In this document: piece after piece, positions 8,461 through 51,688 of the stretch | Position numbering within the stretch: position 1 is the stretch's first letter | How the letters are laid out: each line of letters starts with the position of its first letter | Source of the DNA: Neoechinorhynchus agilis | Lineage: Eukaryota > Animalia > Acanthocephala | NCBI GenBank assembly: GCA_051530055.1 | Contig: CM121341.1 | Location: 9,464,784 to 9,528,783 of the forward strand | Length of the DNA stretch: 64,000 bases | Reading direction: 5' to 3' | Notes under the pieces: generated by a model | The model's input: the letters and a program-made list of their open reading frames with translations, nothing else | What the model was told of the DNA's origin: nothing | Database searches by the model: none | Made by a program: the position numbers and the translations under genes

Positions 8461-10020
8461 ATGACATCGTCTCTCACTACCGCCTACAACTGCAGTGCAA
8501 AATTCAAAATGAACGAAGTGAGTCTTGTCGAACTAAAGAGGAAAATGCCGCATACGGAATTGCAAAAAGGACCAACAATCTTATACACTGTACCAAATGA
8601 TCGTGAAGATTTGATGTTTCCTGGTGCAACGGCTCGCATTTTTGGAAGTGGGAAAGTCGTCGTAAATGTACAAAGCGAAGTACAAGACGGAGCAAAGTTA
8701 TTTTCTAATCATGTTGCTGAACTCATTGGTAACATTTGCCTCAGAGCCGGACAAATGAGCGATTATTCGATTACAAATATCGGATTGAATATAACTTTAA
8801 AATATTGCGTTGACCTTGACTTGTTATTTAACAATTGGGAAGCAATGAAGTTGCCAGATTTGAGGAAAACTGTAAAGCGGGTATATTATTATCCAGAGTT
8901 CTCCAAAGTCGGAGAAATTTGGTTTAGGGAATCAAGCGTAAAAATCACTGCTCATGGCAATGAAATGCTCCAACTTTCGGGTACAAGCGCCGAGGAGATG
9001 ATGGAGAAATTTAAAATAGTTGAACCCCTGCTAGAAATTTCGAAGAAAACAAACAAACCCGCGAGATCTTCCAGTAAACCCAGAAAACGTACAGCTGATG
9101 TTGAACTTTCGGATAAATCAGTAGTAGCTGAACCAAAGAGAAGGTTAACGGAACACGAAACGACCGCAAAAGACGAGCAACATCAGAATGAAACTGAAGT
9201 GAAACGTTCACGTCCTGATCGTAACGATCCCGATAGGTCAGTTCAGCGAGTTTCATCGTATGGCGTTTCCACTGGATCAACTCAATGGCCATTGGTTCAA
9301 ATGGGACAATCCTTCTCCCAACAGCAGCAAATAAATCGCAGCCACCAACGATCGATTCAACAACGACACCAAAATGCCAATACGAGTGTTCAATCTAACT
9401 ACATGGCGTCTATACCATCGTACGGTGAAAGTTTTGTTCAACCAATGAGCAGTCAACAGGAAGTTCCGTTGGATCTGTCGATGCCGCGAGGACGCTATCC
9501 AATACAACAAGACAACCGAGGAAATGCCTACTCGCAGCATTCTTACCAATTGCAAAGGTATCCGCAAACGTGGACCCCTTACGATTTGATTGCGGTTCAA
9601 CCTCAGGCGCAACCCATGAGCAATGCCTATAACAATTTCCAAGGAACTTCATTATCGACCTCTAATGAGTACGTCTATCGACCAGGATATTCCCGAATGA
9701 TAAATCAATCGGTGCCAAATAGTATGGAAGTTTATCCTGGAGGATATTACGCCGAAAGGCCCTATATTAATGAACGTTTTCCACAGCTACTATATCATCG
9801 AGGAAACCAATCCAATCCATCGAGAATGGTACATAACCTTCAAAACTATTACGATGGAGCACGATGGAGTTCGCAACAACCGAATAATTTTCAAGGAATT
9901 CCTCAGTTTCCTACACGAATGGAAATGCCGCAAGGAACAAATTATCGAATGGCTTACAATCCTAATGCGCTGGTCCCACGCAGCCATCAACGACGTACCA
10001 GAAACCGATCACGTCGTTAA
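8461..10020 (+). CDS. Divergent TBP-family (TRF2/TBPL1-like) protein, 519 aa, with C-terminal Q/N/Y/S/P-rich low-complexity tail
   Basis: Repeat 1 ATARIFGSGKVVV resembles TTALIFSSGKMVC. DYSITNIGLNITLKYCVDLDLL resembles [22 protein letters not shown]. YYPEF...LQLSGTSAEEMMEKFKIVEPLL resembles YEPELF...[22 protein letters not shown]. The ORF is uninterrupted. Confidence 0.8.
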   Translation: MTSSLTTAYNCSAKFKMNEVSLVELKRKMPHTELQKGPTILYTVPNDREDLMFPGATARIFGSGKVVVNVQSEVQDGAKLFSNHVAELIGNICLRAGQMSDYSITNIGLNITLKYCVDLDLLFNNWEAMKLPDLRKTVKRVYYYPEFSKVGEIWFRESSVKITAHGNEMLQLSGTSAEEMMEKFKIVEPLLEISKKTNKPARSSSKPRKRTADVELSDKSVVAEPKRRLTEHETTAKDEQHQNETEVKRSRPDRNDPDRSVQRVSSYGVSTGSTQWPLVQMGQSFSQQQQINRSHQRSIQQRHQNANTSVQSNYMASIPSYGESFVQPMSSQQEVPLDLSMPRGRYPIQQDNRGNAYSQHSYQLQRYPQTWTPYDLIAVQPQAQPMSNAYNNFQGTSLSTSNEYVYRPGYSRMINQSVPNSMEVYPGGYYAERPYINERFPQLLYHRGNQSNPSRMVHNLQNYYDGARWSSQQPNNFQGIPQFPTRMEMPQGTNYRMAYNPNALVPRSHQRRTRNRSRR

Positions 10021-10849: not shown

Positions 10850-12560
10850 TACTCGGGGAAAAGATTAAAATGGTGCTTACCCAGAAATTGGGCGAGAATG
10901 TGGCTGAACTGGAACGCTAGTGGAATGAGACAGCCGGAGCGATTTGTAGTGAAGCAAAGAACATCCTAGGAATGACATCGGGGAAACCTCCACCCTAAAA
11001 CAAAGAGGCATGGTGGTGGAATCCAGCCGTCAAGGACGCAATCAGTTTGAAAAAATCAGCCAGGAAAAGATTGGATTTTGACGCTTCGGCCTCGAATGCA
11101 GACGCTTACAAGCAGCCAAAAAGGAAGGATGCACGAGAATGTGCCAAAACCAAGAGGGAAGCCAATAACGACCTGTACGAGCAATTACAGCGAGGGAGTT
11201 GTATAGACATGGTCTTCAGGTTGGCCAAAGTCAGGGATAAAAAAACACGGGATATTGTGCACCTCAAAATGACCAGAGATAGCCACGGAACGACGCTGGA
11301 ACAATGCAAGGACATTTTGGATAGGTGGAAGGAATGTTTCAGCACTCTACTGAACACACCCGAATGTCAATATGACGAGGCCGTAGTCGTACGATGAGGT
11401 GGTTACACCGCTCAAGAAAATGAAGACTGGTAGGAACGCCGGCCAAGATAACATTCCGATCGAGCTGTGGCAATCCCTCGGAGTCCTCGGAATAAACTTG
11501 GTTACGAGGCTCTTTCAGAAGATAGATATGGAGGAAAAGATCCCGTGGGAATGACAGGGAAGTATATTGATACCTATCTTCAAAGGCAAAGGAGATGTTC
11601 TGCAGTGTAGGAACTACCCCGCTATCAAACTCATGTCTCACACAATGAAATTGCGGAAACGAATGATCGATCACAGGATAAGAGAGGAGATCCGAATCAG
11701 CGAGGACCAACGAGGATTCATGCCGGTCAGAAGCACAATCGATGCAATATTCGTGCTAAGGCAGCTGTATAAGAGGTTCAGTGCTCGTTGCACAGTGTGT
11801 TCGTCAATTTGCGAGAACGCTGTGTCGCCGCGATTTAGGCGATGTATCGAGAATGCTACACCTTGGTACGATGCCACAGCGGATCCATCGACTATTTTCG
11901 AGTCCCCGTGGGTCTGCAATAGGGTTCGGCTCTGAGCCCATTCTTGTTCACGATCGTAACGTCCTAGGGAATGCGGAAAGAGAAATGAACGCACCATGGA
12001 CGATACTATTCGCGGACGATTAGGTGCTCGGAGCTAGGGACGTGGACACTCTCAGGAATTTGCTGGAGAGTTGGCGACAGCGATTAGAGAGTAACGGATT
12101 GAGAGCGAGCAGGCGCAAAATGAAATATCGGACAAAGAGTTCAATGCGAATGGAACAACTGGAGGAAGACAATTGGCATCCTTTGCGATAAGCGTCTCCC
12201 GAACAAGCTTAAATGGCGGGTGTACAAGGCAGTAGTGGGAACCGCCATGCTCTACGGAGCAGAAACGGTGGCTACGAAGAAGGAAGACGTTCAACGATTA
12301 GCCGTCAACGAAATGCGGATGCTGAGATGGTCCGCAGGATTGACACGCAAGGATCAAGTGCCCAATGAGGAGGTGCGAAAGCTGTTTGTTGTCGATCCGA
12401 TCGAGGAGGCAATCGCTTAGAAGCGGATGGGACGGTACCTGCAGATGACACAAGCAGATGAAGACGCAGCTCGGGGGGAAAAGGAGAAGAGGGAGGCCCA
12501 AGAAGATGTGGAAGGACAGTGTGAGAGAAGATCTCAAGATGCTGGGATGTTGTTGTTGTT
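10850..12560 (+). mobile_element. RTE-clade LINE, decayed RT with 3' (TGT)n tail
   Basis: WWWNPAVKDAI; IPIFKGKGDVLQCRNYPAIKLMSHTMKL; QRGFMP.RSTIDAIFVLRQL; GSALSPFLF; ILFADD; YKAVVGTAMLYGAET; tgttgttgttg at ~12548. Confidence 0.9.
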
Positions 12561-12939
12561 GAAAATGTACATTTTCTTATTTTCTTACAATCTGATTTCA
12601 GAAACAATTGTTGTAAATCAATCATTTTTGCTCAATATATAAACGAATGTATCTTGAATTAGACGATGAATTTTCTTTAACCGTGTTCCATAAGTCAATT
12701 TAGCCGCCCTCGTTAGTGCAGTCAAAAGATGACTTAAATTCGTTTAAAGCTTTTAAAGCGCATTGGGAGAGCCCAGAAAATCCAACCGTTCATTTAATAA
12801 ATACATAAACGTCAAAATTAATCAAAATAACATTTCTTTACAGGTATTACCCTTATTGAACTTCATTTTGTCGATTCCATGTGGAAAAGACTACAATTTT
12901 ATAAATTGAATCATTTAACGTGTTTAAAACTTTTTCATT

Positions 12940-13620
12940 TAAAATAAGTCGACATGAAATGATTCACACCACCGCCTTTCTGGATCACTCAGCTGCCGTC
13001 CTGGTGTAACGGCCGAGAGGACGGATGCAGCGTTCCCTCGTTGCAGAGTTAGACTTATGTTTTGTAGGAGGAATGCTCCTGATCTCAGATCGCCAGTGAT
13101 TCGTCTCAATCTCTTAGACAATTGCTTGACCAAGTTCTGCGGTACCAAACGACCCAAGTGCCTAGACGCCAAAGGGAACAAAACAATGATTTCGACTAAG
13201 GTCCCTGTATTTTGTCCTTTTTCGCTCCTCAGCTGCGGTTCCTGATCTCCCTCCGGTTTAACGATAGCGAATTTATTTTTGCTGGCTGCGAAGTCCCAGA
13301 AAAGATATTTGCGTCCCCTCGCCACGGGAATAGTATGATACCGCCTGGTCTACGGCGGTCATCGAGTGGGCAAAGATTGCTCGGCTCTAGGATGTTGGGC
13401 ACCTTTGACAGAATTCAGGGCACGGCTTAGAGAATTGCGTTCACTTCGGCCTGTCGTGAGTACCTTCCGCCTGATTGCCGACAGACGAGGTCATGGTGTC
13501 CCGATGGTTCCACGGTCGCTCCGCAACGGCAGCGATGGGATGTGCACATCGGTGCCCCAAGTCTCAAAGACATTGCGGTCTTTACGGTTTCGCCGCAGGG
13601 TACCGACAAAAGCGATTGGG
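12940..13620 (-). mobile_element. CRE-clade non-LTR element, zinc knuckle/RLE endonuclease remnant
   Basis: LRLGAPMCTSHRCRCG..GHH.LVC..SGGRYSR and QNISLTLQRGNAASVL; interrupted by unrelated sequence at ~13165-13290. Confidence 0.8.
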
Positions 13621-15422: not shown

Positions 15423-16120
15423 ATGGGAGTTTCTAAAAACGTACAGAAATGTACCGCACAATGCGACTGGTCAGTGCCAGCTGAGATGATGATGGGAAGG
15501 CGGCTGGCTACGAAATTCGATCATATAAAGCCAAGTTTCAGATCGAAACATCAGCCAAAGGGATTCTCGAAGGGCAGAGGGTTTACAGAAGGACAGCCTG
15601 TCTGGTGGAATAGGTCAAAGAACGACAGGTGGGAAAAAGGAATTGTGCGGAGACAAACGGGACCGCGATCGTTCGTCATAAATCACGGAGATGGGGTATA
15701 CAGGCGCATACACGGTGATTATGTTCGCGATCGACTGACGATAGAGCAGCTAAATAGAGAGAGGGATCAAAACGAAAATGAAATCATAGAAGAGCACGAA
15801 CAGCAGTCCATCAAGCACGAACAGAAACCAATCGAGCGCGAACGGCAGTCCATCGAGCACGAATAGCCGCCAACCAATGTAAACACTCGCTGATCTATCG
15901 ACCACGGAACCCAACCAATAGAAGAAGCAAAGACCGAGTTCTGGGAGGATGGTAGAAGAGATAATATGGTGTTAAGATGGAGCAATCGAATTCGCAAACC
16001 TCCGTCCAGACCGTATGACAAGTTTCTGAAATAGACGGGGGAGGAATGTGGTGAGTGACAAATCGATACGGTATTTAAATGTTAAGCGGAGATCGATAAT
16101 TCACTCACTACACAGAGCGC
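15423..16120 (+). mobile_element. Gypsy integrase C-terminus, polypurine tract and start of 3' LTR
   Basis: PAEMMMGRRLATKFDHIKP..GQPVW..WEKGIV..GPRSFVI and RIRKPP; PPT acgggggaggaa at ~16036-16046 followed by tgtggtgag at 16047. The LTR start is repeated at 13690-13765. Confidence 0.8.
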
Positions 16121-16420: not shown

Positions 16421-16537
16421 ACTTATGTTTTGTAGGAGGAATGCTCCTGATCTAAGATCGCCAGTGATTCGTCTCAATCTCTTGGACAATTGCTTGACCA
16501 AGTTCTGCGCCGCGGTGATATTTTAGTATCTTGATGC

Positions 16538-16551
16538 CTGTGACGTCACAG
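16538..16551. promoter_or_regulatory. 14 bp CRE-like palindrome upstream of the eL40 fusion gene
   Basis: ctgtgacgtcacag, ~77 bp before the ATG at 16628. Confidence 0.5.
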
Positions 16552-16627
16552 TAAAAAGAATTCTTCCAGATATCCTTCTCGTTCGCACACTTTCTTCCCT
16601 TAGTCTTCCCGTACTGTAGATCGTTGC

Positions 16628-16990
16628 ATGTATCCCGTGATTCTTCGTCTTCCCGACGAGTCGATTCGATTCGTTCAATTGAACGATTTGTCCAATGCTG
16701 TAGAAGAGATTCGCGATATTTTCGATCTTTGTGATTCGATCAGATTTAGAGTTGAAATTAATGCTGGTAGCGAAGGACACTTTTCTCGTGGGCAATTATT
16801 CCCAGTCGTTTGTGGAGGAGTGGGCGATGGAATTGAACCAACTCTTAAGGCATTGGCACTCAAATGCAACAACGATAAAATGGTGTGCCGAAAGTGCTAT
16901 GCCCGGCTTCCACCTCGTGCTACTCATTGCAGGAAACGGAAATGCGGTCACAGTAGCAACTTAAGGAAGAAAAAACCACCAAAGAATTAG
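16628..16990 (+). CDS. RPL40: Ribosomal protein eL40 fused to a divergent non-ubiquitin leader ending in GG
   Basis: [48 protein letters not shown] is clearly eL40 with its four zinc-binding Cys. The 64 aa leader ends VVCGG and lacks ubiquitin identity. The ORF is intact. Confidence 0.92.
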
Positions 16991-19384: not shown

Positions 19385-20699
19385 CGTATCGCCGTAACCC
19401 AATACTTCGTCGATGGCTCAGTAGGAACCGCACATTTGGATCGTAAGCTATTTGATAATTTGTTCCTTGCGGCACTTGCATTCGCGTGAATTTTGTTCCT
19501 GTCTTAATAAGAGGAAATTCGGGAATTCTTTGAAAATTATTCGGCTTTTGCTACTCGTACTCACTCCATCGTCGTAATAGTTTTGAAAATTTATGTACTA
19601 TTCTCGATTGATTGAAACGGTTTCCTCGATGATTTAGTCGCTGTGTAAGACATTCATTAACATAAGAAGTTTCTGTGTAGTATCCTCCAGGATAAACTTC
19701 CATACTATTTGGCATCGATTGATTTGTCGATAATGAAGTTCCTTGGAAATTGTTGTTGACATTGCTCATGGGTTGCGCCTGAGGTTGAATCGTAATTAAA
19801 TCGTAAGGGGTCCACGTTTGCGGATACCTTTGGAATTGGTAAGAATGCTGCGAGTAGGCATTCGCTTGGTTGTCTTGTTGTACTGGACAGCGTCCTCGCG
19901 GCATCGATAGATCTAACGGAACTTCCCGTTGACTGCTCATTGGTGAAACAAAACTTCCACCGTACGCTGGTCAAGACGTCATGTAGTCAGATTGAACACT
20001 CGTATTGGAACATTGCTCGATCGTTGGTGGCTTCGATTTATCTGCTGTGGTTGGGAGAAGGATTGTCCCATTTGAACCAATGGCCATTGAGTTGATCCAG
20101 TGGGAACGCCATACGATGAAACTCGCTGAACTGACCTATCGGGATCGTTACGATCAGGACGTGAACGTTTCACTTCAGTTTCATTCTGATGTTGCTCGTC
20201 TTTTGCGGTCGTTTCGTGTTCCGTTAACCTTCTCTTTGGTTCAGCTACTACTGATTTATCCGAAATTTCAACATCAGCCGTACGTTTTCTGGGTTTACTG
20301 GAAGATCTCGCGGGTTTGTTTGTTTTCTTCGAAATTTCCAGCAGGGGTTCCACTATTTTAAATTTCTCCATCATCTCCTCGGCGCTTGTACCCGAATGTT
20401 GGAGTATTTCATTGCCATGAGCGGTGATTTTTACGCTTGATTCCCTAAACCAAATTTCTCCGACTTTGGAGAACTCTGGGTAATAATATACCCGCTTTAC
20501 AGTTTTCCTCAAATCTGGCAACTTCATTGCTTCCCAATTGTTAAATAACAAGTCAAGGTCAACGCAATATTTTAAAGTTATATTCAATCCGATATTTGTA
20601 ATCGAATAATCGCTCATTTGTCCGGCTCTGAGGCAAATGTTACCAATGAGTTCAGCAACATGATTAGAAAATAACTTTGCTCCGTCTTGTACTTCGCTT
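19385..20699 (-). pseudogene. 5'-truncated, frameshifted inverted copy of the TBP-like gene
   Basis: Reverse complement of ~8674-10000. It lacks the first ~70 codons; the core is nearly identical, while the tail is much more diverged and frameshifted (ORFs 19979-20617 and 19551-19940). Confidence 0.9.
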
Positions 20700-20767
20700 G
20701 CTGTCGTTGAACAGGGGGTTGAATCGATCGTTGGTGGCTGCGATTTATTTGCTGCTGTTGGGAACCG

Positions 20768-20922
20768 GGCTTACGTGTCTAATTGTTTTTACCTCGATCA
20801 CGAGTATTGGAAACATGAAATAAATATTCTATTATAGCGATCTATGAAAATTTCATCATTCTCTTCAATTAATCTATCTTGATATATTATCGAGAGCCCA
20901 TGATTGCAAATGCGCGGTTCCC
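20768..20922 (-). pseudogene. Inverted fragment of the SLC17-like 3' end
   Basis: Diverged reverse complement of 6730-6912 with a deletion between tgatgaaat direct repeats. Confidence 0.8.
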
Positions 20923-25514: not shown

Positions 25515-27335
25515 GGCGCAGCTCCTTTGGCTGTGAAATTATTTTTTTCCAATTTTGATAATGAAAATACGACGTGAGACATTAATCTTTCGCTAAGCGT
25601 AAGGAGAGCAGTTTAGTATCGTTCGGGCCAAATGAACGATACTATCATGGGCTAGTAAATTAAAAATTTTGGAACCAGAACTGGAATTCGAAGACGCCAA
25701 TTTTGGATTATTTGACCAAACCTCAAGAATATATAATCCAGAGTCAAATCCACTCTGTTTGCGATTTTTTTCCGAAAAATTATTGTTGGGGGGATATCTT
25801 TGAGGGAACCCTAAGAGTGAAATTCAAAAATAGAATTTAATATATCCTCAAACGACGAAACCTTAAGCCAGCCTGTTATTTTATATTTCCTAGAAAGATT
25901 GCTCTTCTTTTTAGGAGTTTTCATGTACGATCGGAGGTTTTGTACAGGAGATGATCGATTGGGTGTCTTTCCTTGTTCTCCGGTTATTAAGGAAAGATTG
26001 GGCTCGAGGGAGGAAAGATTTTTAGTAGAGGGCGGTACGAGCGAGGGGGAATAAAAAGATTGGGGTTACGGGTAATTACGAGGGAAGAGTATTTAGAGAT
26101 GAGGGAAGAAAATTGTGGAGGGTTCCCTACTATTCGTCAGGACACAAACTGAGCGGGATACTGAAAGTGAGATCATCACAGCTTACGGAGATGCGTGGTA
26201 TATTCGATGAACTGTAAGGATTGCGACCAAGTCAATGTTGGACAGACAAAACAGGGGATGCGAAAAAGAGTAGAGAAACATGAGTATCCGCTACGACGAG
26301 GTGACGTGTCATCAGCTTTGTTCAATCACGCTATCAACAACGACCACAGAATCGATTTTGAAAATGCGTTTACAAGGATGGCCGAGAGGAACCAACAGAG
26401 CAGGTTGATAAACGAGGCTCTGCTCATTGATATGGAGGACACAATGGAAGGGAACAAGAGCAATCATTCTCTAAGATTTCCGACGAGGAATCTCCATTTG
26501 TCTTTTGTGCAGGGGGTGAAACATCACCTCGGGAATCGACGATCCCGCGCACTCGAGTCAAGGCTCACGTCCATTTTTAGATGCTTGGGGAGGAGGCTGA
26601 GACCTTGAAAATTCACAAGATTGATTTCAATAATAAAGCTCGAGTGTGTTACAATTCGCCATTGAGAATATTTTGGTAACTTTATTTATTTTAACTTAAC
26701 TTCACTTTTTAAATGTAGTCGATATAGTACATAAGTAGCTGGATTTTAAAATAAAATCATTTTAATTTCTCCGCCAGAATACAACCGAAATAATGACTGT
26801 TTCAATTGAAATCAGCAAGTTCGTTTAGGCGTTTTTAAATTCTGGCATTTAATGACAAGAATCGTTTTGCGAAATTTCAGAACTTAAAAACAGCAAAATA
26901 AATCTATTCAAGGCAACTAGTCATCCGCCTTCGTCAGTTTTCTAAAATAGTCAGAAAATCCAACAAACTAAACACAAAACGTATTTCGTGTTCAAGCCCG
27001 GACTGTACAATAATCACCCTCTTCTTCGGCACAATCCCGCAGGATCCTACTGCAGACTTAATGTGTGAGTTCTGTTGCGCACGGATACTCTCGAAATTAA
27101 CCCCTAAACACTCAATCACTGAAGTAAGCACACAACTTCGAACTCAAACCGAATCCGACACTATCATTACTGTACCGGACGCTAAATCGGCCCCTCCCCC
27201 CAAACAAAATAACAATCAAATCAGCTTCATCTTTCATCCAATCGACCATTGCAAAGGATGGCACTCTTGACGTGTTCTCAATGTTTGGACACTCAGAATC
27301 CTCGAACCGGCCCTGACTCGCCCACCGCGCTCGCC
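25514..27335. repeat. Inverted duplication of 1426-5899 with 2582-5326 missing; includes Penelope GIY-YIG/pLTR (26121-26670, +)
   Basis: 25514-26122 is the reverse complement of ~5327-5899; 26121-27335 is the reverse complement of 1426-2581. Small insertions at ~25725-25760 and ~27005-27060. Confidence 0.92.
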
Positions 27336-33599: not shown

Positions 33600-35435
33600 C
33601 CTAAACCTTTTGGCTCTTATGATCACGATTGTCCTTGGAAAAGTGGTTTTGAATGTGACTTGGATGATGACGTGTATAGTTTTTACACGATATTCGAAAC
33701 GATGTGGCGTTTGTTTTTGGAATATTAAAACATGTCATCTGGCGATGAGGATGTCCGAACCCGAATGAAGACAATCGAGGATATTCTGATAAATCAACAG
33801 TTGATACAGTTGTTGACACGGGAAGCCAAGCCCAAATCCGGCAATATGAACGACAAGAATATTACGGGATTCGAGTGGGCTTCCTATGAGATGCAACTAG
33901 AGAAACATTTTGAATACTGCGGAGTAAGTGACGACTCTATTAAACAAGCATGTTTACTCGCCTGGATGGAATCGAGTGTATTCTCAACGATTCGATAACG
34001 TTTAGGAGTAAAGAAGCCGTCGGAATGCACATACTCAGAACTACTGGGAGTATTGAGAAACGTTTTCCGAAGTGAAATTCATGAAATCGCAACTCGATAC
34101 AAATTTTTCAATATGGTATCGAAGGACGAACCTACCGTGAGTGGGTAGCTGACCTGAGGGGTGCAGCGAATGGTTGCCAGTTCTTCAAGGAGAAAATGGC
34201 TAATGAATAGGAAGCGACCGAAGTATACATAAGAGATGCGATCATAATGAATACGCCCCATGACGAGATCAGGAGAACGGCTTTCCATAAAAAGGACCTA
34301 TCGCTCAAAGACCTGTTAGAAATAACGGATGCATACGAGAGTGCGAAAGAGGCACTAAAGATCATGCCGAAGATAGAAAGAAAAGATCAATCAGACCCAG
34401 AAGTGTTGAAGGTGAGTACTTGGAGTCACAAGGGGCGGCAGATGGAGAGGACGAACAGCGACGAACAAGGTAAGTCTGCGACAATGATCGTCAAGACCTG
34501 TCTACACTGTGGCCGAAAGCACAATGATGTTTCGAGGTGCCGAGCCAAGACAATGGTGTGCTACAAATGCAACAGAGTGGGTCATTTGTCACGTTGCTGT
34601 AAGACCTCTCGTATGGTTCAACAGATAATTGGACAGGATTCGAGCGACGATGAAGCGATTGTGCGATGCATTAGAACCGTAAAGAGAAGAAAAAAGCGGA
34701 AATTCGCGCGAAAATCAACGGGATCCCGATCTCTATGGAATTCGATACAGGAGCTGCTGAGTCCATCATTATTCGAAATATATGGGCGAAGCTGGGAAAG
34801 CCAAAATTAGGAGAAGCTCCTTCAATCAGAGCGTTTGGTGGCACGAAGATTGATACTCTTGGGTCATGCAATGTGCAGGTGACGCTAGCTAATCGAACGG
34901 AAACGCTCAACGTCATTGTGATCTCGGGCGTAGAAAGGCCAATCTTCGGATTACTTTGGATGCTCAAATTCGATTTAACGATTCCTGCAGCACGGATTGT
35001 TGATGTCCACAAAATTCGAGAAAACGGTACGTCAACGAACGAAACGGGGGATCTATCCGATGCGAAGAAAATCGAGGCTTTGATGAGGAACGAATTCTAG
35101 ACGGTATTTTATGGAAAACCGGGGCAGCAACAAATTTCGAAGTAAGCCTGTCGGCCATTAAGAACCAAGAAGGTACGACGTGGAAGGCTAGAAGAGTGCC
35201 TTTCGCTCTCTATGAACCTCTTGAGAAAGATTTGGAGTGATTAGTCTCGAATGGTACTCTGATCCCAGTGGACGTGACAAAGGAGGATCTCAAGTGGGCG
35301 ACGCCCATTGTAGTCGTACGAAAACCGAACGGGAAAGTAAGGGTCCGCGGAGACTTTAGAGTCACGCTGAACAAACTTATGAAAGTAGATTCCTTACAAA
35401 CACCAACATTCGAGGAGGTGACGTAGAAGTTAGCC
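33600..35435 (+). mobile_element. Gypsy LTR retrotransposon 5' half: LTR end, PBS, gag, protease, RT start (decayed)
   Basis: ...tgtca-tc-TGGCGATGAGGAT (33740-33752; tRNA-Ser(GCU)-like PBS); gag WASY..QLEKHF; knuckles CLHCGRKH and CYKCNRVGHLSRCC; protease FDTGAAESII; RT WATPIVVVRKPNGKVRVRGDF. Confidence 0.92.
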
Positions 35436-35489: not shown

Positions 35490-36575
35490 GTTATCGGCCT
35501 CATTATTTTATGCTAGTTTCAGATTCGCTTCTAAATATTGGATGTTACATTAATTTAACATCATATTCTTCCGTGTAAATCACTGGAAAAACGATAATAA
35601 TAAAGTAATTTTTATCGTGACGTCACTTTGTCCTTATTGGCCTCAGTATTTGATGTTAGATTCCGATTCTTTTCTAAATATTGAATGTTACATTAATTTA
35701 ACATCATATTCTTCCGTGTAAATCACTGGAAAAACGATAATAATAAAATAATTTTTATCGTGACGTCACTTTGTCCTTATTGGCCTCATTATTTTATGTT
35801 AGTTTCAGATTCTTTTCTAAATATTCACCATTAAATTCATTTAATATCGAATTCTTCCGTGTAAATCACTGGAAAGACGATAATAATAAAGTAATTTTTA
35901 TCCTGACGTCACTTTGTCCTTATTGGCCTCATTATTTTATGTTAGATTCCGATTCTTTATCTAAATATTGAATGTTACATTAATTTAATATCACATTCTT
36001 CCGTGTAAATAACTGGAAAGACGATAATAATAAAGTAATTTTTATCCTGACGTCACTTTGTCCTTTATTGGCCTCATTATTTTATGTCTTTTTCATAATC
36101 TTTTCTAAATATTCACCATTAAATTCATTTAGTTTAAAATTCTTCCGTGTAAATCACTGGAAAAACCATAATAATAAGGCAATTTTTATCGTGACGTCAC
36201 TTTGTCCTTATTGGCCTCAGTATTTGATGTTAGATTCCGATTCTTTTCTAAATATTGAATGTTACATTAATTTAACATCATATTCTTCCGTGTAAATCAC
36301 TGGAAAAACGATAATAATAATAAGGTAATTCTTTTCCGTGACGTCACTTTGTCCTTATTGGCCTCATTGTTTTATGCTAGTTTCAGATTCGCTTCTAAAT
36401 ATTGGATGTTACATTAATTTGATATCATATTCTTCCGTGTAAATCACTTGAAAAACGATGCAAATAAAATAATTTTTATCCTAACGTCACTTTGTCCTTT
36501 ATTGGCCTCATTATTTTATGTTAGTTTCAGATTCTTTTCTAAATATTCACCATTAAATTCATTTAATATCGAATT
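35490..36575. repeat. Tandem array, 143-147 bp monomer (~7.5 copies), two subtypes
   Basis: ttccgtgtaaat at 35569, 35712, 35855, 35999, 36143, 36286 and 36433. Confidence 0.95.
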
Positions 36576-36659
36576 CTGGTGTAAGTGCGGTAGATCAAAC
36601 TGTTTCGGATGTTCTCGGAGTGAATTTTTCGATCTTATCGTTGAGCTTCTTTGAAAGTA

Positions 36660-39656: not shown

Positions 39657-41490
39657 TTGTTGATTTCGCAAGCGCCCGTACAGATTTAAGCGATTTTCGC
39701 TTCAGCTTCCAATCGACATGATATTTCCAGTCTAGTTTTGTGAAATACTACTTGACTTTTCTGCCACGTGATTGATCAAGTTTGTTTTTAATACGAAACT
39801 TGGCTGGGCTGTTGACAAAGAAAATAAAAAAATCTTGATTTCCGAACATTCGCCATCTTACGGCTTCTTCAGGAATCTAAAAAGGCGTGTGGGGTTGTGA
39901 ATTGTGTTAAACTATCGACATTAAAATGTAGAAAGTTCGTCTCGCTCGTTTAAAAGTTCTGGGGTGTTGCCGAACTGATGTCCAGAACTCTCTCTCGCAT
40001 AGTCCTAGGAGACACCTTCACTTTCCAACCGCCGGTGTATAAGCAGTACCTCGGCAATCGGTATTCCACCGAATCCTTTACCACAGACCGAACTCGTATG
40101 GAGAGTTACTCTGTCGCAATGGATTTCGGAGCGGTTCTTTTGTTTACGGTGTAGCCATAATACTGCATCCGGATTCAGTGTGTTGGGAACTTGTACGGTC
40201 CAACGTTAACGCACGCGATGACCATTTGCGCCCACGGAATTCCCTGGACATGTTTCTGGCGTTTCGTGATGTTCAGTTCTCGTTAGGATTCGTCTAAGTG
40301 TAAGCACACTTCTGTGGAAAATCCGGGCATCCATTCTAATCATGGCAGATTCTTTAGAACTTCACTTGGAAACTTTTCGATGATATATGGAATCTTGAGA
40401 ATCGGTTTCCTCCATATCGATTCCCACAACGATCATCGTTCCGTTTCGCGTCTTTTGAATTACTTGGCGGCAAGATCTCTTTTTTCGTGTATATCCATTA
40501 TGAGCGAAAATTCCGTTTATTCTGTCTATCGCCAATCGTTTCTCCGTTAACGACGATGAACAAACCAGTGCTGTAATGTACATCTCAGCGTAAATTGCTT
40601 GTTTCATCACGGAAAAATGATGGAAATCTCGATGCATGACTCCGCTTTTAGAGTTTGCGATATAAATTGAAATCCGTGACCTGATTAACTCTGAAACACA
40701 AATTCAGTATGGCAGATAATCCGGTGGTTTGTCTCGCATCACCTTAATCCCTCCAGTAGGATCCATAGAATTCAACCCCTTGGTCATCGACCTCACAATC
40801 CTCTCTGTAGGTTAATAGCTCATCATCCAGATAGCGGAGGTAAATTTGGCTCGATGTTTAATGTGGGAAGATGCACTGCTTTTACAAATCACCGAGGAAA
40901 ATTATTGCCAAAACGGGAGCAATGCTGTTTCCCATTGACAGCCCATGGATTTATCTATAAAGTCGGTCGTTATATCTAAAGAACCTGCAATCTAAAACCA
41001 GTCAAAAGAGTCGAATCACGTCCGTCGGTAACAGTCCAAATAGATTTAATGTTTTCTGGAGGGATATAAAGCTAATTTTAGCTTGAAACTTCCAGCCAGC
41101 GACGTGATAAAAATCAATATAAAAAATCAATAAAAAAAGGGTTCAAGCGGATAATTAGTCCCTGAACTTCGGGTTTGGCGATCCCGCGCACTCGAGCATA
41201 AATCGTAATACGGAAAACCTATTTTTAGATGACTGAAGAGGCGAGGATACCTCGCGAAATATTTCGAATAAATAAAATATGTAATGACCGGGATTATTCT
41301 CACCGAAAGTGTAATTCCAAGAAGCTTCAATAACCCGCAGCAAATCCAATGATTCAAAATTTTGTGATATAATGCGACATCCAATGTTAATCTCCGATAT
41401 AATTTGCCCAAATCATACCGCAAACGGTTCATGCGATCAAAATTGTTCATGAAAGCACGGACTTGTTTGCCCGATTTGCTGTTTTTATGC
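39657..41490 (-). mobile_element. Penelope element (second family), decayed RT and 3' pLTR, facing outward
   Basis: GLSMGNSIAPVLAII; YLRYLDD; LNSM; KQAIYAEMY..ALVCSS..NGY; hammerhead at 39837-39877. Confidence 0.88.
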
Positions 41491-41502
41491 ACTTCATTCC
41501 GA

Positions 41503-43480
41503 TTAATCGTTATCGACTCAATCGGTAATGCGAAATTTTTTATTTTTCTTATCTATAAACGCGAATAAAATGTAATCAGCGCTAAAAATAAACTTTCCCG
41601 GTTTTGTTATAAGACAAATTCCGGAATCGAAGCCTTAAACGTTTTAAGGCCCCACAAATTCTATATTCAGCACAAGAGCTAAAAATCTAATGCTAATTTG
41701 TAGAAATTTGGGCTACAAAAATTACCAAAATAAATCGATTTAGGAGAGGTTCATTTAGGATGCATCCATGGTTTTTGAAGGCGATATCTATCGGCGTTTT
41801 TAAAAACTTTTTAATCGTTATCGACTCAATCGGTAATGCGAAATTTTTTATTTTTCTTATCTATAAACGCGAATAAAATGTAATCAGGGTTAAAAATAAA
41901 CTTTCCCGGTTTTGTTATGAGACAAATTCCGGAATCGAAGCCTTAAACGTTTTAAGGCCCCACAAATTCTATATTCAGCACAAGCCTAATGCTAAAAATC
42001 TAATGCTAATTTTAGAAATTTAAGCTACAAAAATAAACAAAATAAATCGATTTAGGAGAGGTTCATTTAGGATGCATCCATGGTTTTTTGAAGACGATAT
42101 CTATCGGCGTTTTTGAAAAACTTTTTAATCGTTATCGACTCAATCGGTAATGCGAAATTTTTTATTTTTTCTTATCTATAAACGCGAATAAAATGTATTT
42201 AAACTTTCCCGGTTTTATTATGCAAATGCCGGAATGGAAGCTTTAAGCGGTTTGAGGCCCCACAAATTCTATATTCAGCACAGGAGCTAAAAATCTAATG
42301 CTAATTTGGCGAAATTTAAGCTACAAAAATTAAATCGATAACAGAGGTTCATTTAGGATGAAGGCGATATCTATCGGCGTTTTTAAAAACCTTTTAGTCG
42401 TAATCGACTCAATCGGTAATGCGAAATTTTTTATTTTTCTTATCTATAAACGCGAATAAAATGTAATCAGGGCTAAAAATAAACTTTCCCGGTTTTATTA
42501 TGAGACAAATGCCGGAATGGAAGCTTTAAGCGGTTTGAGGCCCCACAAATTCTATATTCAGCACAGGAGCTAAAAATCTAATGCTAATTTGTAGAAATTT
42601 AGGTTACAGATATGAAATAAATAAATCAATTTAGGACAGGTTCATTTAGGATGCATCCATGGTTTTTGAAGGCGATATCTATCGGCGTTTTTAAAAACCT
42701 TTTAGTCGTTATCGACTCAATCGGTAATGCGAAATTTTTTATTTTTCTTATCTATAAACGCGAATAAAATGTAATCAGCGCTAAAAATAAACTTCCCGGT
42801 TTTATTATGAGACAAATTCTGGAATCGAAGCCTTAAAAGTTTTGAGGCCCCACAAATTCTATATTCAGCACAAGAGCTAAAAATCTAATGCTAATTTGTA
42901 GAAATTTGGGTTACAAAAATTACCAAAATAAATCAATTTAGGAGTGGTTCATTTAGGATGCATCCATGGTTTTTGAAGACGATATCTATCGGCGTTTTTA
43001 AAAACTTTTTAGTCGTTATCGACTCAATCGGTAATGCGAAATTTTTTATTTTTCTTATCTATAAACGCGAATAAAATGTAATCAGGGCTAAAAATAAACT
43101 TTCCCGGTTTTGTTATGAGACAAATGCCGGAATGGAAGCTTTAAACGGTTTGAGGCCCCACAAATTCTGTATTCAGCACAGGAGCTAAAAATCCAATGCA
43201 AATTTGTAGAAATTTAGGCTACAAAAATTACCAAAATAAATCGATTTAGGAGAGGTTCATATAGGATGCATCCATGATTTTTGAAGACGATATCTATCGG
43301 CGTTTTTGAAAAACTTTTTAATCGTTATCGACTCAATCGGCAATGCGATAATTCTTATTTTTTCTTGTCTAAAAACGCGAATAAAATGTAATCAGGGCTA
43401 AAAATAAACTTCCCCGGTTTTGTTATAAGACAAATGCCGGAATCGAAGCTTTAAACGGTTTGAGGCCCCACAAATTCTAC
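41503..43480. repeat. Tandem array, ~308 bp monomer (~6.5 copies)
   Basis: Unit starts at 41503, 41811, 42125, 42394, 42702, 43009 and 43318. Confidence 0.97.
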
Positions 43481-43573
43481 ATTCGTCTCAGCAGATGTTA
43501 ATGCGATTTAATTGCCATATCAAACTGCCATCCATGGTCTTTCACTCAATATTGATGGACCGGCAAAGTCAAA

Positions 43574-43710
43574 CGTACAACAATTTCAAGATTAGAAACG
43601 TTGTTATGAGGATTAGGAACAAGGAATTCCTTTTCAAAAGTATTCGGGAAAGGGAAGAGATCCCGCCGGAGAAAGTCTTGTGAAGAGGCTTATACGGGAA
43701 CATGAAAACT
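43574..43710 (+). pseudogene. 3' remnant of the TFIIA-L-like gene in the left arm
   Basis: FKIRNVVMRIRNKEFLFK matches the reverse complement of 47814-47950; upstream exons are missing. Confidence 0.85.
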
Positions 43711-44179
43711 GAATATAACCTTTTTGTTAGAATTATACACTTAATAAATAGAATGTTGCTAGCACGGTTAAGAATTTTTGCAATGAAACATAATTTGATG
43801 CCTTTTAGAAATGGTGGAGAATCGCTTTAATGAACTTTTCGCTAGGTGTTTGCTACTGCGAGTATATCGGTCATTTCATTTTTGGATGTTATTTTTATTT
43901 GGGCGGCTACAAAGCAAAGGTTTTCAATAAATCAGTAACAAATACTAAACGCCACTAAATAAGATTCCAAATATTCTGATGATCTCTATTTAACAGTAAT
44001 TAAGAGGCATAATATTTATTAGACAGCTACCAATAGAAATGTTCACGTGGTAACGTGAGAAGCGGGCCTAACACTAACAAATAAGTTTATCAACAGCTTC
44101 GGTTTACTATTTATTAACAGTTCGAAGAAACACACGATCGTATCTCCTTCAATTGCGATATTTTACAACTTAAAGAGAG

Positions 44180-44719
44180 ATGCAACGACGGATCAGTGAT
44201 CACTCACCAATCTTCAAGAGATCAAAACAGTCTTGGCCACGTTCAAATCGAATCGAAACTCATCAACAATCAACAAAATATCACCAAACACGAAACAGAG
44301 ACCGAAATCAAATGCCAGTTTTCGAGCGTCGAGGCGATCATTCAACATGGCACTCACGAAATGTTAGCCAGCGACGGCAAGATAATGAAAGTAATTTTTA
44401 TGAACCTCAATGGAGAGCCAATCGAAATTCTAATTATCGACCATCATCACACAACCGAAATTATCAAAGATATCGAAATTACTGGCAGGAAACAAGACAG
44501 GACAATCGCACGAAGCAAGAGCGTGAAACAAGACCGTGGTCGCCAGAATTCAATAGAAGGAAGCAATTTCAAAAAAGAGCTTCGCGACAACAGAACGATT
44601 TTCCGATCCGAAAACGTCCTCGAGTGACATTGGAGTTCCTCGACAAACAACCTTTCGTCACATTTGAAAAATGTTGTTTTATATTGATTTATATTTTTAT
44701 ATATCGATTAGTGACATAA
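44180..44719 (+). pseudogene. Copy of the R-rich UBM-like gene, truncated inside its C-terminal motif
   Basis: Near-identical to 46793-47347 up to VTLEFLDKQ (44650), then reads into unrelated sequence. Confidence 0.8.
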
Positions 44720-46792: not shown

Positions 46793-47347
46793 CTACGGTT
46801 TTTCATTTTTCTCCGAAGTAGCCTCTTGTGCAGGTCCCATCGCCATTCGCTCCCTTGCACATTTGGCCATGTAGTCATCCAATTGTTTGTCGAGGAACTC
46901 CAATGTCACTCGAGGACGTTTTCTGATCGGAAAATTGTTTCGTTCCCGTAACTCTCTTTTTCGAAATCGCTTCCTTCTATTGAATTCTGGCGACCACGGT
47001 CTTGTTTCACGCTCTTGGCGATTGTCCTGTCTTGTTTCCTGCCAGTAATTTCGATATCTTTGATAATTTCGGTTGTGTGATGATGGTCGATAATTAGAAT
47101 TTCGATTGGCTCTCCATTGAGGTTCATAAAAATTACTTTCATTATCTTGCCGTCGCTGGCTAACATTTCGTGAGTGCCATGTTGAATGATCGCCTCGACG
47201 CTCGAAAACTGGCATTTGATTTCGGTCTCTGTTTCGTGTTTGGTGATATTTTGTTGATTGTTGATGAGTTTCGATTCGATTTGAACGTGGCCAAGACTGT
47301 TTTGATCTCTTGAAGATTGGTGAGTGATCACTGATCCGTCGTTGCAT
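46793..47347 (-). CDS. Arg/Gln/Asn-rich 184 aa protein with C-terminal UAP56-binding-motif-like helix (ALYREF/CHTOP/UIF-like, no RRM)
   Basis: RPRVTLEFLDKQLDDYM resembles the xxEELDxxLDxYM UBM/FoP motif; preceded by a low-complexity R-rich region; intact ORF. Confidence 0.65.
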   Translation of the reverse strand: MQRRISDHSPIFKRSKQSWPRSNRIETHQQSTKYHQTRNRDRNQMPVFERRGDHSTWHSRNVSQRRQDNESNFYEPQWRANRNSNYRPSSHNRNYQRYRNYWQETRQDNRQERETRPWSPEFNRRKRFRKRELRERNNFPIRKRPRVTLEFLDKQLDDYMAKCARERMAMGPAQEATSEKNEKP

Positions 47348-47813
47348 CTCTCTTTAAGTTGTAAAATATCGCAATTGAAGGAGATACGATCGTGTGTTTC
47401 TTCGAACTGTTAATAAATAGTAAACCGAAGCTGTTGATAAACTTATTTGTTAGTGTTAGGCCCGCTTCTCACGTTACCACGTGAACATTTCTATTGGTAG
47501 CTGTCTAATAAATATTATGCCTCTTAATTACTGTTAAATAGAGATCATCAGAATATTTGGAATCTTATTTAGTGGCGTTTAGTATTTGTTACTGATTTAT
47601 TGAAAACCTTTGCTTTGTAGCCGCCCAAATAAAAATAACATCCAAAAATGAAATGACCGATATACTCGCAGTAGCAAACACCTAGCGAAAAGTTCATTAA
47701 AGCGATTCTCCACCATTTCTAAAGGCATCAAATTATGTTTCATTGCAAAAATTCTTAACCGTGTTAGCAACATTCTATTTATTAAGTGTATAATTCTAAC
47801 AAAAAGGTTATAT

Positions 47814-48822
47814 TCAGTTTTCATGTTCCCGTATAAGCCTCTTCACAAGACTTTCTCCTGCGGGATCTCTTCCTTTCCCGAATACTCCTTTGAAAAGGAA
47901 TTCCTTGTTCCTAATCCTCATAACAACGTTTCTAATCTTGAAATGTTGTACGTCCCATTTCATATATTTTGGTTCACTAATTCCAATAATTATATCATCG
48001 GTCTCAGGGTACTCTTCGACGTCTTCACCGCTCAGAGAATCTGCCGAATCAATCGTGATCCTTTCACTTTTATCAATTTCTACGTCTTCAATACTTTCTT
48101 CACTTGTATCACAAATGTCACTCTCTTCTATCTTGTTTTGCATTGAATCTTCTAAAGACAAATCACTACTATTTTGATTCATTGAGTCTCCAACACGAGT
48201 CCTAGCCTCCATCCTTCCTCTATTTACAGTTTCTATCTCGTTAGATCCATCGATATCACACGTATCGATTGAAGAGATGCTTACAAGGTCTTCCTCCATA
48301 TCCTCTAGCATTCTTCTATTTGAAATTAATACCTCACTCATTTCATTTATATTAGACGAATCGATTGAAGATATGCTTATAGCGTCGTCATCTTTGCTAA
48401 CTTCATTATTTGAACCGAATCTTTTAAATGGAGCAATTCTTTGCAGTACTTCATGATCTAAGCAAATTAGATTTTGTTACAATTGTTAAGAGTTCAAGCC
48501 GAACCTACCCGCTGGCCCACCAAAAGTTCCAGCCTTGATCAACAAATCAATCCATTTCTGGCGTAATATTAGCAAAACTTTAAAATGATAAATCTAAATT
48601 AACATACCTCCTTTAATTCCGCAATTTTGCCTGTCTCAATACCTCTCCTCGAGAATAACGGTTCTAGCCGTTTACCAACTTCCCGTATCGCCCCATAATA
48701 TTGATTTCTCTGCGGAAATTTAAATTTCTTATTAGATCAATAAAGATTTCTTTTACCGTTGTAGCTGATCTTCGACTTGTCGCAAAATGAATTGGCCTTT
48801 CACATCCCCTAGTTCTTCCCAT
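47814..48822 (-). CDS. TFIIA large subunit (GTF2A1/TOA1)-like, 4 exons, ~286 aa
   Basis: Exons 48822-48757, 48709-48608, 48557-48509 and 48457-47814, with GT-AG introns of 47, 50 and 51 nt, join in frame. N-terminal FSRRGIETGKIAELKEKWIDLL resembles FLDDGVDEQVLMELKTLWENKL; acidic linker; C-terminal FKIRNVVMRIRNKEFLFKGVFG resembles FHLKDGIMNLNGRDYIFSKAIG. Confidence 0.82.
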
Positions 48823-49258: not shown

Positions 49259-49640
49259 TTAGCTAAGAATTCTACCCCGATGTTTGATTGCGCGAGACAT
49301 AGAAGCCAATCGGAGTTCAATCGTAGCGTCTGCACTTTGATGGTCGCCGGATACTGCATTACAGACGTATATTCCTTCATTTTCTTTCCCGAAATTTGTG
49401 ATTGTAAACGCTCCGTTAGATTCCTGAGTGCTTTGAGGATGTGTAGGATTGGGTCGCATCACCCACGTGATCACGGCTCCTCCCTAAATAATTTCGCTCA
49501 TTTTGAAATATTCTCCTTTAGACCGGCATTTAAGGGTGACATTATCTCCTGCACTTATTGTTGACTTTGCCGGTCCATCAATATTGAGTGAAAGACCATG
49601 GATGGCAGTTTGATATGGCAATTAAATCGCATTAACATCT
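49259..49640 (-). pseudogene. Immunoglobulin I-set domain remnant
   Basis: STISAGDNVTLKC...VITWV...NGAFTITNFGKENEGIYVCNA; in-frame TAG between the parts with no canonical donor. Confidence 0.65.
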
Positions 49641-49649
49641 ACTGAGACG

Positions 49650-51688
49650 AATGTAGAATTTGTGGGGCCTCAAACCGTTTAAAGCTTCGATTCCGGCATT
49701 TGTCTTATAACAAAACCGGGGAAGTTTATTTTTAGCCCTGATTACATTTTATTCGCGTTTTTAGACAAGAAAAAATAAGAATTATCGCATTGCCGATTGA
49801 GTCGATAACGATTAAAAAGTTTTTCAAAAACGCCGATAGATATCGTCTTCAAAAATCATGGATGCATCCTATATGAACCTCTCCTAAATCGATTTATTTT
49901 GGTAATTTTTGTAGCCTAAATTTCTACAAATTTGCATTGGATTTTTAGCTCCTGTGCTGAATACAGAATTTGTGGGGCCTCAAACCGTTTAAAGCTTCCA
50001 TTCCGGCATTTGTCTCATAACAAAACCGGGAAAGTTTATTTTTAGCCCTGATTACATTTTATTCGCGTTTATAGATAAGAAAAATAAAAAATTTCGCATT
50101 ACCGATTGAGTCGATAACGACTAAAAAGTTTTTAAAAACGCCGATAGATATCGCCTTCAAAAACCATGGATGCATCCTAAATGAACCACTCCTAAATTGA
50201 TTTATTTTGGTAATTTTTGTAACCCAAATTTCTACAAATTAGCATTAGATTTTTAGCTCTTGTGCTGAATATAGAATTTGTGGGGCCTCAAAACTTTTAA
50301 GGCTTCGATTCCAGAATTTGTCTCATAATAAAACCGGGAAGTTTATTTTTAGCGCTGATTACATTTTATTCGCGTTTATAGATAAGAAAAATAAAAAATT
50401 TCGCATTACCGATTGAGTCGATAACGACTAAAAGGTTTTTAAAAACGCCGATAGATATCGCCTTCAAAAACCATGGATGCATCCTAAATGAACCTGTCCT
50501 AAATTGATTTATTTATTTCATATCTGTAACCTAAATTTCTACAAATTAGCATTAGATTTTTAGTTCCTGTGCTGAATATAGAATTTGTGGGGCCTCAAAC
50601 CGCTTAAAGCTTCCATTCCGGCATTTGTCTCATAATAAAACCGGGAAAGTTTATTTTTTGCCCTGATTACATTTTATTCGCGTTTATAGATAAGAAAAAT
50701 AAAAAATTTCGCATTACCGATTGAGTCGATTACGACTAAAAGGTTTTTAAAAACGCCGATAGATATCGCCTTCAAAAGCCATGGATGCATCCTAAATGAA
50801 CCTCTCCTAAATCGATTTATTTTGTTTATTTTTGTAGCTTAAATTTCTACAAATTAGCATTAGATTTTTAGCTCGTGTTCTGAATATAGAATTTGTGGGG
50901 CCTCAAACCGCTTAAAGCTTCCATTCCGGCATTTGTCTCATAATAAAACCGGGAAAGTATATTTTTTGCCCTGATTACATTTTATTCGCGTTTATAGATA
51001 AGAAAAATAAAAAATTTCGCATTACCGATTGAGTCGATAACGATTAAAAAGTTTTTCAAAAACGCCGATAGATATCGTCTTCAAAAAACCATGGATGCAT
51101 CCTAAATGAACCTCTCCTAAATCGATTTATTTTGGTAATTTTTGTAGCTTAAATTTCTACAAATTAGCATTAGATTTTTAGCTCTTGTGCTGAATATAGA
51201 ATTTGTGGGGCCTTAAAACGTTTAAGGCTTCGATTCCGGAATTTGTCTTATAACAAAACCGGGAAAGTTTATTTTTAGCGCTGATTACATTTTATTCGTG
51301 TTTATAGATAAGAAAAATAAAAATTTCGCATTACCGATTGAGTCGATAACGATTAAAAGTTTTTCAAAAACGCCGATAGATATCGTCTTCAAAAAACCAT
51401 GGATGCATCCTAAATGAACCTCTCCTAAATCGATTTATTTTGTTTATTTTTGTAGCTTAAATTTCTACAAATTAGCATTAGATTTTTAGCTCTTGTGCTG
51501 AATATAGAATTTGTGGGGCCTTAAAACGTTTAAGGCTTCGATTCCGGAATTTGTCTTATAACAAAACCGGGAAAGTTTATTTTTAGCGCTGATTACATTT
51601 TATTCGCGTTTATAGATAAGAAAAATAAAAAATTTCGCATTACCGATTGAGTCGATAACGATTAAAAAGTTTTTCAATAACGCCGTCG
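49650..51688. repeat. Tandem array, ~308 bp monomer (~6.6 copies), inverted relative to 41503-43480
   Basis: The gagtcgataacga(t/c)taa motif ends at 49815, 50124, 50431, 50739, 51047, 51356 and 51665. Confidence 0.97.

Follow-up and report, generated by a model that had tools for sequence, protein, structure and literature searches.

The fusion of ubiquitin to the ribosomal proteins eL40 and eS31, shared by almost every eukaryote, poses an open question, put as "chance or necessity?", of whether ubiquitin supply from the shared precursor co-regulates synthesis and degradation or whether ubiquitin serves there as a cis chaperone (PMC8122580). A locus in the acanthocephalan Neoechinorhynchus agilis raises this question in an unusual form: what becomes of the fusion when its N-terminal half can no longer be recognized as ubiquitin? 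The locus lies in a 64,000-nucleotide stretch of contig CM121341.1 (GenBank assembly GCA_051530055.1, positions 9,464,784 to 9,528,783, forward strand), referred to throughout as the window, and consists of a complete open reading frame (ORF) in which a short leader ending in Gly-Gly precedes an eL40 domain. Our analysis indicates that this is probably a UBA52-type eL40 gene whose ubiquitin moiety was freed from ubiquitin function and decayed to a lysine-free leader of 64 residues. By analogy with the FUBI moiety of the eS30 precursor, the leader would most likely be a cleavable cis-chaperone propeptide that is no longer a source of ubiquitin; its fold, its release at the Gly-Gly and its chaperone role are features that we infer. 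An earlier note made from the DNA letters had described the ORF, the 64-residue leader, the retained di-Gly and a VGDG linker, and the coordinates and sequence are exactly as it quoted them.

The eL40 domain and its leader

The C-terminal part of the predicted protein is a member of the eL40 family as judged by its profile match and by its metal-binding residues. Residues 69-116 match Pfam Ribosomal_L40e (PF01020) with an expectation value (E) of 6.4e-26 and 90.5 bits against a cut-off of 23, covering positions 1-48 of the 50 in the profile, and the four zinc-binding cysteines (Cys87, Cys90, Cys101 and Cys106, spaced CxxC...CxxxxC) are present and invariant with those of P0002, a close relative deposited in UniParc as UPI00079F9D20. 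Comparison with the eL40 chains of solved 80S ribosomes gave E 1.4e-21 over query residues 66-117 only, and identity of the eL40 part reaches 82% to P0002, 78% to the best canonical eL40 and 67% to the human protein. With these scores, all four cysteines retained and neither frameshift nor stop, the description of eL40 as intact in the earlier note holds. Conservation between N. agilis and P0002 is markedly uneven, falling from 82% in eL40 to 27% in the leader, which is the pattern expected of a working gene with a relaxed leader. This asymmetry, taken together with the intact frame and an old junction shared with P0002, points to purifying selection on eL40 and argues against a decaying pseudogene. 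From the sequence we infer that the locus is a functional eL40 gene. A repeat comparison of the 64 kb found its coding DNA to be unique within the window, and the eL40-bearing matches listed included no further eL40 from N. agilis. A probe that joined canonical ubiquitin to this eL40 was swamped by polyubiquitins, including canonical ones from the bdelloid rotifers Rotaria and Didymodactylos, and no entry from N. agilis was among the matches listed; neither L40, UBA52 nor polyubiquitin is mentioned in the supplement to the N. agilis transcriptome paper.

Direct comparison failed to identify the leader as ubiquitin. Pfam searches with the whole protein and with residues 1-68 alone returned neither ubiquitin (PF00240) nor any other ubiquitin-like (UBL) family, even at E<=10. 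BLASTP against ubiquitin gave E 6.2, a semi-global alignment gave z 0.2, and a profile hidden Markov model (HMM) of 113 unique eL40-attached ubiquitin leaders scored the leader at -0.6 bits, a value equaled by 300 of 2000 shuffles. A tblastn search with ubiquitin over both strands of the window reached a best E of 0.62 and found nothing at the eL40 locus, no ubiquitin remnants of the kind left by compensated frameshifts were seen in the other frames of the leader DNA, and BLASTP against FUBI, with a FUBI sequence entered by hand, produced no alignment at E<=100. The leader is 12 residues shorter than the 76 of ubiquitin, has none of its seven lysines, and departs from it in the functional DETERMINANTS, where the tail LFPVVCGG stands in place of LVLRLRGG, so that LRLRGG is lost and Gly-Gly retained. 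Because it has neither lysines nor an LRLRGG tail, the leader would be unable to act as ubiquitin. Across ten aligned UBL–eL40 leaders Met1, Gly63 and Gly64 are the sole invariant columns, and in its Gly-Gly the leader appears to retain the one feature required for endoproteolytic release. Two statements of the earlier note are thus borne out, namely that the leader shares no recognizable identity with ubiquitin, which is true for direct comparison, and that it no longer supplies ubiquitin.

The N. agilis precursor can be compared with several known systems. Like human UBA52 and yeast Ubi1/Ubi2, it places a moiety ending in Gly-Gly in front of a 52-residue zinc-binding eL40, and its eL40 part is a clear orthologue; by descent it is the same gene. 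It differs in lacking the hallmarks of a canonical ubiquitin–eL40 precursor, which are a PF00240 match, a 76-residue moiety whose LRLRGG abuts eL40, and the lysine and I44-patch determinants; a VGDG spacer instead separates the Gly-Gly from eL40, and the leader would make no contribution to the ubiquitin pool. The FUBI–eS30 precursor (FAU) likewise carries a non-ubiquitin, di-Gly-ended leader on a ribosomal protein, FUBI being almost and the N. agilis leader entirely lysine-free, but its partner is eS30 of the 40S subunit rather than eL40 of the 60S, and the two leaders share no sequence similarity. FUBI has kept 36% identity to ubiquitin and a full-length beta-grasp, and it is an old protein found widely across Holozoa. 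The N. agilis leader has fewer residues and has degenerated much further, and only two sequences of its form are known from our HMMER search. A further lead is the nematode UBL-1–eS31 precursor (RPS27A), in which, reportedly in the account of Jones and Candido in 1993, the fusion ubiquitin had diverged to a ubiquitin-like sequence; it has another fusion partner and a leader that is reportedly still recognizable as ubiquitin-like. The single lysine of FUBI is the equivalent of K27 (PMC8354635), a residue that P0002 also retains. The analogy to FUBI drawn in the earlier note therefore fits in functional terms, through the scarcity of lysine and the di-Gly dependence of FUBI cleavage, and finds nothing in sequence to support it.

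Ancestry and predicted fold of the leader

The origin of the leader is best approached through P0002, which is 50% identical to the N. agilis protein across its full length. Among 424 fetched proteins only these two combine the GG-VGD[GK]-IEPTL junction with the motif KCNNDKM, the spacer being VGDG in N. agilis and VGDK in P0002, and no canonical ubiquitin–eL40 in that set has a GGVGD junction. An exhaustive HMMER search of 1.84 billion representative proteins with a profile made from the pair returned 781 eL40-type matches, of which only the two query sequences themselves reached E<=1e-30. No closer relatives of P0002 were found, and a scan of metagenome DNA for KCNNDKM and GGVGD[GK]IE produced 599 pattern matches, none of them real. 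The 77-residue leader of P0002 is a gapless, end-to-end divergent ubiquitin: it scores 30 bits against the 113-leader HMM (E 2.4e-11; 0 of 2000 shuffles), aligns to ubiquitin with z 12, and matches PF00240 in register at E 0.008. In the HMM alignment its equivalents of ubiquitin I44, K48, K63, R72 and R74 are T, V, E, S and A, and a lone lysine occupies the K27 position. The N. agilis leader resembles this divergent ubiquitin significantly (BLASTP E 0.007; 5 of 5000 shuffles).

A second link runs through P0006, whose leader lies above the Pfam ubiquitin cut-off (28.1 bits). The N. agilis leader aligns to it with z 9.3 (0 of 3000 shuffles) and is recovered by tblastn at E 8.5e-6, with 33% identity over 76 residues in the frame of the ORF. 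An HMM of divergent leaders from which the N. agilis leader had been excluded was matched as well by 2 of 3000 shuffles, and hhalign against a UBL profile gave P 0.002 over residues 4-29. All of this similarity falls within residues 1-30, which comprise the predicted beta1, a shared LRLPD turn, beta2 and the start of the helix. On these comparisons the leader is homologous to the ubiquitin-like superfamily, by a link that is transitive only, through P0002 and P0006 and over residues 1-30, and it looks like ubiquitin's own decayed descendant rather than a newly recruited UBL. A turn of the form LRLPD or LRLPG is common to P0006, P0073 and the acanthocephalan leader, possibly through convergence. 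A transposon origin of the leader was considered and rejected, its coding DNA being unique in the window.

Degenerate eL40 leaders also occur outside acanthocephalans. In the protist UBL–eL40 precursors P0006, P0013, P0425 and P0060, eL40 stands behind a strongly diverged, GG-ended leader, often with a spacer of 4-6 residues, as in the junctions GGVGASG... and GGAGDK.... They differ from the N. agilis protein in that their eL40 is 45-65% identical to it, against 82% for P0002, with other eL40 signatures and in unrelated lineages, and in that most of their leaders pass or approach the Pfam ubiquitin threshold. Judged from these sequences, such leaders arose independently in protists, so that the phenomenon is not unique to N. 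agilis. P0013, P0006 and P0425 (L003, L004, L005-L007) share a GG-[VI]G-x3-[IV]P[DE]HL junction and a KKKIKEKEGKK tail. The contigs of this group are AT-rich, gene-dense and intron-poor, carry ciliary genes next to the eL40 gene and derive from gut metagenomes, features that indicate a ciliate-like protist and on which an assignment of the group to rotifers, and with it a Syndermata-wide trait, was rejected. P0060 (L002 4001-4384, Logan SRR23617210) has eL40 behind a 66-residue, lysine-free and Pfam-invisible leader that ends in LLRGG and is followed by an AGDK spacer; its locus, in a very compact genome, adjoins genes for uL22, a proteasome subunit and eIF-5/eIF-2B. No description of degenerate leaders for eL40 was found in the searchable literature, and a 2021 review tallies such genes as "stand-alone eL40" by Pfam architecture (PMC8122580).

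Structure prediction was consistent with a reduced version of the ubiquitin fold. With an alignment of ten sequences, which contained ubiquitins, AlphaFold2 modeled the leader with a mean predicted local distance difference test score (pLDDT) of 57.3 and a predicted template-modeling score (pTM) of 0.33, placing a helix at residues 21-31 and strands at 2-7, 13-18, 38-44 and 55-61. The same beta-beta-alpha-beta-beta order was obtained at pLDDT 42 when no alignment was supplied, and this single-sequence model was too poor for a fold search. Foldseek against the PDB returned nothing at E<=0.001; the best match was a ubiquitin variant at E 0.23 with a query TM-score (TMq) of 0.58, and the best-ranked weak matches were mostly ubiquitin variants, di-ubiquitin, SUMO1 and NEDD8, with TMq 0.43-0.58. 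The model probably fits a beta-grasp that has lost roughly the beta4/3-10 segment, a loss that would account for the 12 missing residues. The order of the elements agrees with the beta-grasp that the earlier note put as a question for residues 1-64, at low model confidence. A profile search of the PDB with alignment A2 was not counted as evidence, its matches being trivially driven by the ubiquitins in the alignment.

Processing and competing explanations

The proposed mechanism is drawn by analogy from yeast ubiquitin–eL40 and human FUBI–eS30. Leader and eL40 would be translated as one precursor chain, in which the leader would act in cis as a chaperone that aids the production, folding or solubility of eL40. 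A deubiquitinase-like protease would then cut after Gly64, and the released eL40, keeping an extension of 3-4 residues from VGDG, would enter the 60S subunit. The freed leader would not be ubiquitin and would probably have no role in conjugation, so that ubiquitin would have to come from other genes, for example polyubiquitin or ubiquitin–eS31. In yeast, eL40-linked ubiquitin raises the yield of eL40 as a cis chaperone and can be replaced in part by SUMO, and the fusion must be cleaved for 60S function (PMC8122580). Cleavage of human FUBI–eS30 requires the di-Gly and USP36, and uncleaved mutants block 40S maturation (PMC8354635).

Several observations weigh against this account. Ubiquitin-specific proteases normally read the Arg and Leu residues of the tail, and cleavage is not assured because PVVCGG lacks them. 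Residues 31-62 of the leader match nothing, and with the C-terminal half unrecognizable a complete beta-grasp may be gone. The beta-grasp fold is weakly supported, given the low pLDDT, pTM and Foldseek significance and the ubiquitins in its alignment, and per-residue confidence drops from about 70 in the first 20 residues to below 50 after residue 45. P0002 is known from its UniParc entry alone, without a contig. P0006 was picked as the best match from a very large database and comes from a ciliate-like protist, and its likeness to the N. agilis leader may be partly convergent. The start codon is ambiguous on the sequence, giving a protein of 120 or 130 residues, and the gene sits in a repeat-rich region. 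The extent of leader divergence is less surprising in this lineage, since acanthocephalans are marked by extreme gene loss and divergence, N. agilis being without about 45% of metazoan BUSCOs (PMC12256650).

The repeat-rich setting is what one would expect if the gene were a superfluous or eroding paralogue, for instance one retroposed into transposon-rich DNA, while a normal ubiquitin–eL40 elsewhere did the work: the gene has essentially no introns, repeat copies stand on either side of it, a repeat of 89 bp lies directly upstream, and the neighboring annotated genes are transposon-like or without a Pfam family. Neutral erosion, however, would strike both halves alike, whereas here the eL40 half shows no decay in score, cysteines or frame while its leader has drifted far from that of P0002. 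The derived junction and KCNNDKM common to P0002 mark the form as old and maintained, the 68 codons upstream of eL40 are still open (chance probability about 0.01 at local base composition), and no other N. agilis eL40 came up among the eL40-bearing matches listed, all of which make a paralogue of this kind unlikely. It is also unlikely that the leader is simply not removed at Gly-Gly, remaining on eL40 as a ribosome-bound N-terminal domain or being cut elsewhere by a protease other than a deubiquitinase, for example before IEPTL. The loss of the LRLRGG determinants, the conserved VGD[GK] spacer, which canonical precursors lack, and a C-terminal half that is not recognizably ubiquitin-like would suit that explanation; yet besides Met1 the Gly-Gly is the sole invariant feature of the aligned UBL–eL40 leaders, it was kept in N. 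agilis and P0002 through 73% leader divergence, and uncleaved ubiquitin–eL40 in yeast and FUBI–eS30 in human cells block subunit maturation (PMC8122580, PMC8354635).

The earlier note had read the leader differently, as a new UBL-type carrier recruited in place of ubiquitin in the manner of FUBI, a reading suggested by the absence of direct similarity to ubiquitin, the different length and the stretch from residue 31 to 62 that matches nothing. P0002 speaks against this: it is intermediate in form, joining its eL40 through the same junction to a genuine, if divergent, ubiquitin at the equivalent place. So do the resemblance of the N. agilis leader to those of P0002 and P0006, the register of its N-terminal 30 residues with UBL leaders, the lack of similarity to the hand-entered FUBI sequence, and the leader DNA, which is found once in the window and shows nothing to suggest that a foreign segment was inserted. 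Recruitment of a new carrier is thus highly improbable and we set that reading aside. Most improbable of all is a wrong gene model, in which a distant canonical ubiquitin exon is spliced just before eL40 and the apparent leader is open intron sequence. A possible acceptor (ttattcccAG) does occur at about 16805, shortly before the GG codons, and it is uncertain where the gene begins. Against it, no ubiquitin-coding segment was detected on either strand of the 64 kb, including the 16.6 kb upstream, the leader, read in the frame of eL40, has significant similarity to those of P0002 and P0006, P0002 shares the continuous architecture, and an open frame of this length would seldom arise by chance. 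Decay of the gene's own ubiquitin moiety to a lysine-free leader remains the account that we favor.

That the fusion, the open frame, the N-terminal hairpin and the Gly-Gly were kept while ubiquitin identity was lost suggests that such a fusion can outlive ubiquitin function. If the locus is a working eL40 gene, this would favor the chaperone or processing explanation of the fusion, and the leader would be a minimal natural one for work with yeast ubi1/ubi2 mutants. Decay of the ubiquitin moiety also predicts a protease that cuts after a non-ubiquitin tail as USP36 does with FUBI. It is conceivable, though on balance doubtful, that acanthocephalans or a subgroup of them have fully uncoupled eL40 output from ubiquitin supply by means of a minimal, lysine-free propeptide derived from ubiquitin, whose altered tail (VVCGG with a VGD spacer) would call for a co-evolved or re-targeted protease. 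If true, this would be an eL40 counterpart of the FUBI–USP36 pair and a natural experiment in which selection keeps a cleavable N-terminal folding aid and not ubiquitin itself. For annotation, the locus is a caution that eL40 genes classed as "stand-alone" by Pfam may hide unrecognized remains of ubiquitin. Unless the gene is demonstrated to be expressed and its product processed, the impact on the field would be modest.

Gene model and genomic neighborhood

The ORF product is 100% identical to the corresponding part of KAL7675973.1 (P0001), an N. agilis "hypothetical protein" from the chromosome-scale record (19.4 Mb) of GCA_051530055.1. The public model has 130 residues, gaining 10 at the N-terminus through a 6-nt exon and a 64-nt intron (Table 1). 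The acceptor of that intron is a strong pyrimidine tract (CTTTCTTCCCTTAG), and its weak donor overlaps a 14-nt perfect palindrome, CTGTGACGTCACAG, at 16538-16551, with the CRE/ATF core TGACGTCA. Exon 1 is doubtful and the 120-residue form is favored because P0002 begins at the equivalent of the ATG at 16628; no ATG occurs between 16540 and 16628. The annotated intron could instead be a promoter with a pyrimidine-rich start site or a trans-splice acceptor, as far as its sequence suggests. Spliced-leader trans-splicing is present in bdelloid rotifers and was not seen in Brachionus (PMC1925144). The palindrome, about 80 nt upstream of the ATG at 16628, could be a promoter element, and in 64 kb its occurrence is no more than chance would give (E 0.52). 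Neighboring annotated introns were dropped as a calibration for the 64-nt intron, since they belong to transposon-derived ORFs and are untrustworthy.

Table 1. Features of the eL40 locus, in window coordinates
Feature	Coordinates	Strand	Remarks
Complete ORF, 120 residues	16628..16990	+	open reading frame read from the window
Leader, 64 residues, ends QLFPVVCGG	16628..16819	+	residues 1-30 with detectable UBL signature; residues 31-62 unrecognizable
Gly63-Gly64 codons GGA GGA, presumed processing site	16814..16819	+	
VGDG spacer, from the di-Gly to the canonical eL40 start IEPTL	16820..16831	+	
eL40 domain, 52 residues, zinc-binding Cys87/Cys90/Cys101/Cys106	16832..16987	+	Pfam PF01020; tblastn 1e-18
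TAG stop codon	16988..16990	+	
Annotated exon 1, ATGCCT (Met-Pro), 6 nt, doubtful	16534..16539	+	public 130-residue model
Annotated intron, 64 nt	16540..16603	+	weak donor cct/GTGACG; strong acceptor CTTTCTTCCCTTAG

Two minor features lie within the leader itself. Residues 10-19 and 35-45 (16655-16762), both in predicted beta-strands, echo each other, which could reflect a small internal duplication or chance, and a 16-nt palindrome occupies 16671-16686 of the leader DNA.

The surroundings of the gene are rich in repeats. A direct repeat of 89 bp, 97.8% identical between 16421-16509 and 13053-13141, ends immediately upstream, so that the region upstream beyond about 16510 is repeat-derived. 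Nested inverted repeats of about 0.9-1 kb flank eL40 on both sides, pairing 8673-9659 with 19726-20699 (94.7% identical) and 1697-2581 with 26121-27006 (97.4%). A 519-residue ORF (8461-10020) and an annotated 260-residue gene on the minus strand (19979-20816) belong to one repeat family without a Pfam domain. Retroelement-like ORFs lie at 34247-34810, 12247-12642 and 15423-15866; they include one that is gag-like with a CCHC zinc knuckle, an annotated 115-residue "gene" with a 48-nt "intron" that reads as a fragment of retrotransposon reverse transcriptase, and a 147-residue ORF that resembles an integrase C-terminus by eye and has no Pfam match. A 977-residue ORF (55666-58599, listed with a TTG start) matches no Pfam family at E<=0.01. 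Farther along, a large inverted duplication is arranged about a central segment, 39657-43572 pairing with 49561-53516 and 43573-44650 with 46883-47953 at 96-99% identity, and each arm holds a tandem array of about 310-bp units (41503-43484 and 49649-51685). The segment 44651-45553 is repeated at 63086-64000, and a further tandem array at 35491-36577 has a period of about 143 bp with about 87% identity between copies.

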